NCBI GenBank assembly: GCA_965112735.1
Contig: OZ218959.1
Span: 2,480,001-2,544,000 of the forward strand
DNA: 64,000 nucleotides
Direction of reading: 5' to 3'
DNA from: Phaeosaccion multiseriatum
Lineage: Eukaryota > Protista > Ochrophyta, other classes
Shown here: positions 26,323 to 29,367 of the stretch, one piece after another
Layout: every line of letters begins with the position of its first letter
How positions within the stretch are numbered: position 1 is the stretch's first letter
The notes under the pieces: model-generated
Databases searched by the model: none
Told to the model about the DNA's origin: nothing
Seen by the model: the letters and a program-made list of their open reading frames with translations, nothing else
Translations under genes and position numbers: made by a program

Positions 26323-26711
26323 GTGTGTACGTTTCCCGCTTTCCCTTCCCCTCTTTTCCCCTCCTCCCTTCTCAGCTTCTGCGGCTGCTCTTTCTGCTGC
26401 TGCTGCTGCTACTACGGCGGCGGCTGCTGCTGCTGCACTGATGCGCGGGTACTGATGCTATTGGATGGATCATTGGCGGGGGGTGGTTGCCGTGGTGTAA
26501 AAGAGGGAGGAAGAGCAGAAAAAATAAAAGAGGCAGCCAGCTGTGAGAAAAGCTAAGAACCAACACGCCAGGCAGGGCGGCGCACCGATAATCGCGCACC
26601 AGGAAGGAGAAGATATAAGAAAAGAAGAGAAGAGCAGCAACTTCGATTGATTCGATCTGATCATCTCTCATCGATCTCTCGTCAGACTGCTCCTCGAACA
26701 AATGTTCTGAA

Positions 26712-29367
26712 ATGGATTCCTTGATCGATCTCACGGAAGAAGAGGAATCACCTGCTCCTGCTTCTCCCGGGCCGGCCGGAGGGAAGAGGAGGCGCGATGC
26801 ACTGCAGGAGGCGTCGTGGGGCTGCCTAGGTCGCACCTACCGCCACGAACCCGGGCCGGTTGGAGGGAAGAGGAGGCGCGAGGCCTTCCGTGGGCCACTG
26901 ACCCCATCGCCCCGGATGCCTCATCCACGGACCGACTCAACAATGGAAGCGCACTACGAGCAGACGACGCGACCCCATGGTTCATTTAGTCATCGCGCAA
27001 AACTGATGCTCAAGACGCGGATTGCGAACACTGCGAAGCTGTCGTCGCACACGTCGGGTCGGAGGGTCTTCATTCGTACGACGGCCACGGATATCGATGA
27101 TTCAAAGTGGGAAAAAAGCAAGTACATTTATAATCTCAACCTGTTTTAGGACATTAGCGCACTCGAATACCTTGGCAACGAACCTCCTCTGCTTCTTGTG
27201 ATATCCCGACCGCTCATCCCCGGTGCGCTCCCACTGCTTTGCTCCTCTGCCTCCTCTGCCACAACAGAAAAGGTCAACCCCCGAGTGGGCCGCTTCCAGG
27301 AGAACGTCCCCGGCAGCGACTTCGTTGCCATCCGCAAATGGCCCTACAGCGGGACGTGGGCAGAGAAGAACAATAGGAACAAGGGCTTCAACGAGCTGAT
27401 GCACGCCGAACACGAGGTAAGCAGGACAGGGTGGATCCTCCTGCGCCCAACCCACCACCCACCCTGTATTTGGAGCGTATATAACGTCTTCTTCTTTGTA
27501 CACACGAACAACCAACCGCTTCGTCTATCCATATACGAAAACACCCACCGTCTTAGGTTCTATTCGATGACATGCTGGCCTCGCGCGACGGACATGTGGT
27601 GGTGGCTGCAGTGGCGAAGGCGGGCTTCTTCTGCTGCGCGCCCTGCATCAGAACCATGGTGGAGCTCTCGCACTTGCTCTGCAACAGCTTCATCATGGAA
27701 GACAAGGCAGAGGAGGGGACCAAGGCAGGAAGCCTTCTTTTCTTCTTCGGTGGAGGTATATCAGTCCTACGCGTGTGTACTGTATGAAGGGGCGGGGCGG
27801 GGTGGGGGCTTGCACATCCATTTGTCCTGTGTACGCAAGCACAGGGGCCCAACCCCTCTTCTCCTCTTGTCGTCACTGATCTGTCGCCCCTCCCTCCCTC
27901 CCTCCCTCCCTCTCCTTCCCTCCCTCCCTCTCTCCCTCTCTCCCTCCCTCCCTCCCTCCCTCCCTCTCCTTCCCTCCCTCCCTCTCTCCCTCCGCTCCCT
28001 CCCTCCTCTCCCTCCCTCCTCTCCCTCCCTCCTCTCCTCTCCCTCCTCTCCTCTCCTCTCCTCTCCTCTCCTCTCCCTCCCTCCATCCCTCCCTCCCTCC
28101 CTCCCTCCCTCCTCTCCCTCCTCTCCCTCCTCTCCCTCCCTCCTCTCCTTCCTCTTCCTCCCTCCCTCCCTCCCTCCCTGACAGAGCTCATGGCCGTCAA
28201 GAAGACCGCTCTACAGTCCCATGAGCTCGATCGCCTCAAGAACTTCATCATAACCGCTGTACGGCAGCAGAGGGAGCCAAGCGTCCTTCTGAAGAAGCTG
28301 CGGCAGGAGCTGCGGAGCATGCGTGGCGCCGGGAGGGATGTTACCGAGCTCTTGGACAGGTAGGGAGGAGGGAGGGAGAACCAGTCGGATCAGTCGGATC
28401 AGTCGGATGGCAGTGGATGTTTGTGCTTGCGCTTAACTTTGCGTTACACCCCTTCCTTCCGTCTCCCGTCTGTTCCGTCTCCCTTCTCCGCCCCCTCCCT
28501 CCTCTCCTCCTCCTCCTCCCCGCTCTCCTCACCCCTTTTGCCCCTTCTCGTCCCCGCCTGTCCCTCAACTCTCCGATACGCTACACTGGCTCGCGTCCTT
28601 TCCTCGCCCCCCTCAGGTGGGCCCCCACCTTCTATGGCAACGCTATGATGGGGCTCTTGCCCGCCGGATGTCTGAAGAACACGACCGAGGCCGAGAAGGA
28701 GCTGCTACTGGACTACGTCTATTGCCACTACTTTAGCAATCTCTCCGCCGAGTATGGTCAGTGCGGCATCCGAACTGCAGCGAGCAGTAAGGGAGGTCAT
28801 GGGGGGTGCCGACCACACAGCCCACCGCACAGCCAGGACATACGCAAGTACAGCCGAGCATCGGACTCGAGCAACAGCAACAGCGGCAAGGTGTCAGCTT
28901 GTGGTGGTGGTGGAGGAGGAGGAGGAGGAGGAGGAGGAGGAGGAGGAGGAGGAGGAGGAGGAGGAGGAGGAGGAGGAGGAGAAGGAGGAGGAGGAGGGGG
29001 GGGGGCTCTTGGTAGGCCGGGGCAGGGGAGGACGAGGTGGAGGCAAGAAGGCACGAAGGGGGACGAAGACGACGAGGCAATGTCTTTGACGCTGTGTCAG
29101 GAGGCCGTGCAGAGCATGAAGGAGGAGGCAAAGTCGAGAATGAAGGAGAGCCTGGAGCGCCTCCACGTGTCGTCCTTCTGCGGGCCCATGGAGCTGGATC
29201 AGCATGCGGAGGGACGGGTGACATGCCTTGAACTGTGCCAGCCTCAGTCTCTCCCGTCGGTGGAGGGTGAGGCCTCTGGACATGCGTCAGCGAGCGTCAG
29301 CCTCTCCCGTGGCGGTGGAGGAGTGGGTGTGGGGGCCGGGAAGGCGCGCTTGGGGAGCGGCTCTTGA
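26712..29367 (+). CDS. Candidate Zn-dependent deaminase-fold protein (HAE...CCAPC) with SIM-like and NLS-like motifs
   Basis: Exons 26712-27117, 27268-27416, 27557-27755, 28185-28359 and 28617-29367 splice in frame; the first intron is GC-AG. Exons 2+3 give HAEHEVLFDDMLASRDGHVVVAAVAKAGFFCCAPCIRTMVEL. The gene model is better supported than the functional call. Confidence 0.6.

Follow-up and report, generated by a model that had tools for sequence, protein, structure and literature searches.

The zinc-dependent nucleotide/nucleic-acid deaminase superfamily (CDA fold), with its three-layer alpha/beta/alpha architecture built on a five-stranded sheet, is recognised by a [HC]xE motif at the start of helix 2 and a (P)CxxC motif at the start of helix 3, the two lying about 23–30 residues apart. 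Among the described systems that come closest to the gene considered here are the DYW domains of plant PPR proteins (OTP86, PDB 7o4f/7o4e; DYW1, 7w86; and 9kfx), bacterial toxin deaminases of the C-terminal hairpin division (the T6S cytidine deaminase toxin 9c63, DddA 8e5e and DddB 9k3e) and the CDD/CDA deaminases. The C-terminal hairpin division is part of a published classification of deaminases (PMC3239186).

In the current study, a gene of the alga Phaeosaccion multiseriatum, carried by the window (i.e. the whole 64-kb stretch of DNA that was analysed), was compared with these systems. With the CDD/CDA deaminases its family has in common helix 2, strand 3, helix 3 and the strand 4–5 hairpin, arranged in the same order and of comparable length, as well as a conserved Arg soon after the second Cys (CxxCxR in the family versus PCxxCR in CDA), but it matches neither PF00383 nor PF08211, has no Pro ahead of the first Cys, possesses a long insert between strands 1 and 2 and is larger by about 250 residues. 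In contrast to the DYW domains, the family lacks PF14432, the CxxCH motif, the PG box, the C-terminal DYW and a PPR array, and its remaining parts are helical and bear no relation to them; membership of the DYW family was rejected on the grounds that no family member carries PF14432 and that the motif reads CAPCC or CAPCI without His. A search for PF14432 in the same genome found no DYW family member. From the toxin deaminases the gene is set apart by a lack of sequence similarity, by its eukaryotic, intron-bearing and single-copy nature and by the absence of a toxin/immunity context; no relatives, prokaryotic ones included, were found in metagenome and prokaryote-genome scans.

The true homologues of the gene belong to an unnamed dinoflagellate family (UniRef A0A7S4Q4A1 of Alexandrium monilatum and entries termed 'unnamed protein product' of Symbiodinium natans and Effrenium voratum), with which it shares a colinear core and the same motif and spacing. 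It differs from this family in having an extra SIM/NLS-like stretch at the N-terminus, a run of poly-Gly and a dissimilar C-terminal tail, and in the absence of HAEHF, the second invariant motif, which the dinoflagellate proteins carry in helix 315–340.

A dinoflagellate protein family

When the exon 3 peptide (66 residues) was compared with 1.84 billion representatives, a single match was obtained (P0001, E 9.6e-4), a protein of 119 aa from a marine eukaryote metatranscriptome catalogue which is about 44–45% identical to exon 3 (44% by BLASTP). The same 90% cluster contains P0002, the 481-aa product of three metatranscriptome contigs of ~1.7 kb, and P0002 in turn retrieves 64–81 proteins, all of which are unnamed and devoid of Pfam domains, the named sources being Symbiodinium natans, Effrenium voratum, Alexandrium monilatum, Amphidinium massartii, Apocalathium hangoei and Ansanella granifera. 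The longest of the P0002 contigs begins with CTCAAG (L014:1-6), which we take to be the last bases of the spliced leader of dinoflagellates, at its 3' end, thereby suggesting a nearly full-length trans-spliced mRNA.

The dinoflagellate members are mutually 55–70% identical over their full length, across orders, and 66–81% identical over the core; judged from these alignments, conservation is unusually tight for so broad a dinoflagellate span. The algal gene is a distant member, at 34–43% identity per exon, and its small genome, canonical introns and low identity place it outside the dinoflagellates. The initial annotation, which was made from the DNA sequence of the window, had regarded the gene as lineage-specific, a description that does not survive the finding of the family across dinoflagellates. 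As far as the retrieved sequences indicate, the distribution of the family is patchy, covering all dinoflagellate groups sampled and one ochrophyte-type alga, and transfer or wide loss is needed to explain it. When the window exons were included in the query alignment, each in a row of its own, no further lineage was retrieved; a word search with exon 2 gave no match, and exon-by-exon searches of Pfam, of PDB sequences and of the ESM Atlas were likewise without a match. A literature search found no published description of the family.

Exon–intron structure and short motifs

The P. multiseriatum locus corresponds to a five-exon gene on the forward strand with 1680 coding bases, encoding ~559 residues (the stop codon being included in exon 5). 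Concerning the gene model, a profile of 42 family members was used in a local hmmsearch against the six-frame stop-to-stop pieces of the window, without positions 27984–28049. The profile matches all five exons sequentially and on the same strand, exon 4 not being significant alone, and the match over the conserved core is colinear and significant, as befits a member of the family typified by P0002.

Exon 1 (26712–27117) opens with the start ATG at 26712 and matches profile positions 43–100 (E 1.3e-4); its N-terminal ~70 residues are of low complexity, whereas homology to the beginning of the core conserved in dinoflagellates is seen in its C-terminal half. A minimal upstream ORF (ATG TTC TGA, 26702–26710) stops two bases ahead of the main ATG. 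Intron 1 (27118–27267, phase 1) is of the GC-AG type (gcaagt...cacaacag), as the junction 27117^27268 is in frame solely as a GC-AG intron (aaaaaa^gcaagt ... cacaacag^aa), with a good GCAAGT donor, while the reading from an alternative GT donor at 27122, near the intron start, runs into a stop. At this site the family alignment reads ...DIDDSKWEK^K^VNPRVG versus ...DI..SK.DKRRGGGPRVG, and it is from this alignment and the pairing of splice signals that we infer the boundaries of intron 1. Exon 2 (27268–27416; profile 104–146, E 2.3e-8) contains the conserved block PRVG.FQ..PG and ends in FNELMHAEHE, after which intron 2 (27417–27556; GT-AG, gtaagc...cttag, phase 0) follows with the donor GAG^gtaagc. 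Exon 3 (27557–27755; profile 150–208, E 1.5e-12) begins after cttag with VLFDDML...VAKAGFFCCAPCIRTMVEL and holds, in order, the strand VVVAAVAKAGF, CCAPC with its helix, FIMED and the strand LLFFFGG.

Intron 3 (27756–28184; GT-AG, phase 1) consists mostly of a CT-rich (CCCT/CTCC)n microsatellite of ~290 nt at 27890–28180. Exon 4 (28185–28359) encodes a helical segment (ELMAVKKTALQSHELDRLKNFII...) whose profile match (213–239, E 0.56) is colinear but weak, and the frame is continuous across intron 4 (28360–28616; GT-AG, phase 2) into exon 5 (28617–29367; profile 269–313, E 1.3e-3), which ends with the stop TGA at 29365–29367. In exon 5 the conserved block LLPAGC...F.NLSAEYG is succeeded by QDIRKY, by poly-Gly and by a C-terminal tail without relatives. 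The poly-Gly corresponds to a (GGA)n run at about 28897–28990, i.e. about 27 consecutive Gly, to which nothing similar exists in the dinoflagellate relatives; it could represent true low complexity or conceal a further intron.

The gene is present as a single copy in the 67-Mb genome, a genome-wide search having found no paralogues. Four sequencing runs contain nearly all words sampled from the locus, and RNA runs share 5–8% of these words, most likely those of the CT-rich and GGA repeats. On the basis of its homologues, and not of transcripts, we consider the gene to be genuine and intron-split. Contamination was rejected as a source of the locus, which possesses spliceosomal introns, has the same G+C as its surroundings and lies mid-contig on a chromosome-scale piece.

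The short motifs attributed to the protein in the initial annotation are all present in the sequence as described. LIDLTEEEE (26721–26747), in which a stretch of acidic residues comes after a SIM-like hydrophobic core, is absent from the dinoflagellate homologues. Two NLS-like GGKRRR motifs (26778–26795 and 26862–26879), each within PGP.GGKRRR, stem from an internal duplication, as they are encoded by two copies of a direct repeat of 35 nt (26766–26800 and 26850–26884; 91% identity, spacing 84 nt). In the family alignment both kinds of motif fall within an N-terminal extension for which the dinoflagellate proteins have no counterpart; they are plausible candidates for function, though short. 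QDIRKY (28834–28851, exon 5) had been loosely likened to a PCNA-binding motif. The PIP-box consensus is Qxx[LIM]xx[FY][FY], and QDIRKY, which has neither a hydrophobic residue at position 4 nor an aromatic pair, misfits it, so that its assignment as a PIP box was rejected.

The split motif and the predicted fold

The His and Glu codons of HAE (27402–27410) lie at the end of exon 2 and are equivalent to H174 and E176 of P0002, while CCAPC (27632–27646) is encoded by exon 3, its second Cys (27635–27637) and last Cys (27644–27646) forming the conserved pair that corresponds to C205 and C208. Since exons 2 and 3 are in different frames, no single ORF shows the whole motif. Splicing 27416^27557 gives HAE-x27-CCAPC, exactly as had been described from the sequence, or HxE-x28-CxxC when counted to the conserved Cys pair. 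A stop-free H[AV]E-x20-35-CxxC occurs nowhere in the six frames of the unspliced window and ~0.1 times per shuffled window. The spliced MHAEHEVLFDDML aligns gapless, residue by residue, to MHVEWENHVDHIL of contiguous dinoflagellate transcripts, and the alga and the dinoflagellates agree in the His, the Glu, the Cys-x-x-Cys and the spacing of 28 residues that separates the Glu from the first conserved Cys. From these comparisons the motif is judged to exceed chance, given its rarity in shuffles and, above all, the occurrence of the same motif and spacing in an independent family without a gap over the junction. Both junctions that had been put forward, 27117^27268 and 27416^27557, are supported by the fit to these independent homologous sequences, which align across both and yield colinear profile matches.

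Conservation of the four residues in homologues had been named as a check on the deaminase proposal, and H174, E176, C205 and C208 prove to be near-invariant in 42 dinoflagellate sequences and are retained in the alga, a retention which is statistically weak because 58% of the dinoflagellate-invariant columns are kept in the alga regardless. The Pro that is usual ahead of the first Cys is absent, S or C being found in its place; save for this residue, the family displays the superfamily hallmark as given above.

An AlphaFold2 model was made of P0002 with the family alignment and reached a pTM of 0.75, with pLDDT >90 across most of residues 170–400. In this model a helix at 122–130 and short strands lead to H174, located immediately before helix 175–186, and then to strand 194–200, C205 and helix 206–219, the first turn of which contains C208; strands 222–228, 236–241 and 244–249 follow with no intervening helix. 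CDA-type deaminases of the C-terminal hairpin division have the same order of elements at roughly the same lengths, and the layout that had been sketched for the algal protein (a helix with HxE, a strand, a helix with CxxC and a strand) is reproduced in the P0002 model. Membership of AID/APOBEC was rejected in view of strands 222–228 and 236–241, which have no helix 4 between them, and of the lack of an APOBEC or NAD match in Pfam.

Four different deaminase structures recur in three structure searches, where they cover exactly the segment from HxE to the hairpin, and RecJ/DHHA1, the C-Ala domain of AlaRS and sugar kinases score equal to or slightly above them. Foldseek against the PDB returned no match at E <= 1e-3, and structure searches of the ESM Atlas and BFVD returned no match. 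An AlphaFold2 model of the domain only was weaker (pLDDT 64 versus 77 for the full length) and its search results therefore carry less weight.

Concerning profile evidence, Pfam searches of the exons, of P0002 and of 40 family members at E <= 10 gave no deaminase family, NCBIfam and PADLOC gave no deaminase match, and a PDB profile search with the family gave no match. An hhalign comparison of the family with a set of paralogous deaminases from this genome (HAEP...TAPCxxC) was similarly without a match (probability 0.2%). With a Neff of 1.8 the family alignment has little depth, which limits the reach of such profile methods. The PF00383 matches of the genome, TadA-like and dCMP-deaminase-like ones among them, reside at other loci, in agreement with the earlier view that the window gene is not a housekeeping deaminase. 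The paralogues used with hhalign are single-exon deaminase domains on other contigs (AIAAG...HAEP/T...TAPCxxCA; L006:1354-1803, L008:1438-1887, L009:1429-1878 and L010:1408-1842), which pass or nearly pass PF00383 and have no sequence relationship with the window gene.

Alternative readings and possible function

Taking the predicted structure and the family alignment together, we consider with moderate confidence, at about even odds, that the likeliest identity of the conserved core is a zinc-dependent deaminase domain, divergent in sequence and of the C-terminal hairpin kind (CDA, DYW, DddA-like), with an active site. In the mechanism proposed for it, a zinc ion would be bound at the N-termini of two neighbouring helices by the HAE His together with both Cys of CxxC. 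The Glu of HAE would shuttle a proton, so that cytosine or adenine would be deaminated hydrolytically, whether as part of a nucleic acid, a nucleotide or a nucleoside. The two KRRR motifs may confer nuclear localisation.

A competing reading, to which we assign a smaller though still considerable likelihood, is that the core constitutes an alpha/beta domain unrelated to deaminases, with a fold that has no described relative, and that its H/E and CxxC residues serve a structural zinc, a redox dithiol or some other chemistry. Such a reading would account for the want of a significant deaminase match by sequence, profile or Foldseek and for the scores of RecJ/DHHA1, AlaRS C-Ala and the sugar kinases, and it sits well with the fact that much of P0002, including the helical parts 80–130 and 255–404, extends beyond any deaminase core. 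It leaves aside, however, that an HxE at a helix start and a CxxC at that of the next helix, ~28 residues apart and followed by a strand hairpin, amount to a specific deaminase signature, and that the recurrent deaminase structures cover precisely that segment. Should the core prove not to be a deaminase, it would represent a conserved orphan domain, and even then a well-conserved orphan family would have a gene model that is backed by homology and lies in a genome both small and tractable.

We consider it unlikely that a deaminase-like fold has been retained here without catalysis, as a nucleic-acid/nucleotide-binding or regulatory module comparable to the inactive deaminase domains described in several protists: all four residues required for catalysis are kept in both lineages, whereas inactive versions usually lose them, even if such versions are common in microbial eukaryotes (PMC3239186) and the core is surrounded by large non-catalytic helical parts in the P0002 model. 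It seems very improbable that there is no functional gene at all, the exon chain and motif having arisen through chance choice of splice sites or representing a decaying pseudogene. The low share of locus words in the RNA runs, the GC donor required for intron 1 and the long poly-Gly run in exon 5 would fit such an origin, but five open exons are colinear with an independent protein family without frame breaks, and even the bare motif is expected by chance in about one window in ten.

If the core is an active deaminase, as in the reading that we favour, it would constitute a new clade of a known superfamily, i.e. an undescribed eukaryotic clade without a Pfam model. The strong conservation in dinoflagellates, as seen in the aligned sequences, points to a housekeeping modification or metabolic role over that of a defence mutator. 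The anti-TE/antiviral role suggested in the initial annotation is not sustained, and a defence mutator was rejected, because the gene is single copy and its dinoflagellate relatives are strongly conserved across orders, unlike the fast-evolving mutator deaminases.

We know of no enzyme that has been assigned to the RNA editing of dinoflagellates. Heavy RNA editing is documented in these organisms (PMC4079212, PMC5888634). It is a rather doubtful notion that the window gene and its relatives represent an unrecognised clade of active eukaryotic nucleic-acid deaminases, the pan-dinoflagellate members being candidates for an enzyme behind one of the unexplained dinoflagellate base changes and the algal copy being a nuclear-targeted offshoot; the changes in question would be A-to-G and C-to-U editing of organellar or nuclear RNA, or a deamination step toward modified DNA bases. 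If the core is an active deaminase, the question of the editing enzyme would become testable, as the family would supply a conserved candidate whose catalytic Glu is clear and open to mutation.

The dinoflagellate family contains a second invariant HAE at P0002 315–340, where it forms part of HAEHFARL.AEYGAS inside a long helix. A catalytic role for this motif is improbable, since in the algal protein F..LSAEYG is retained but HAE is replaced by YCH.
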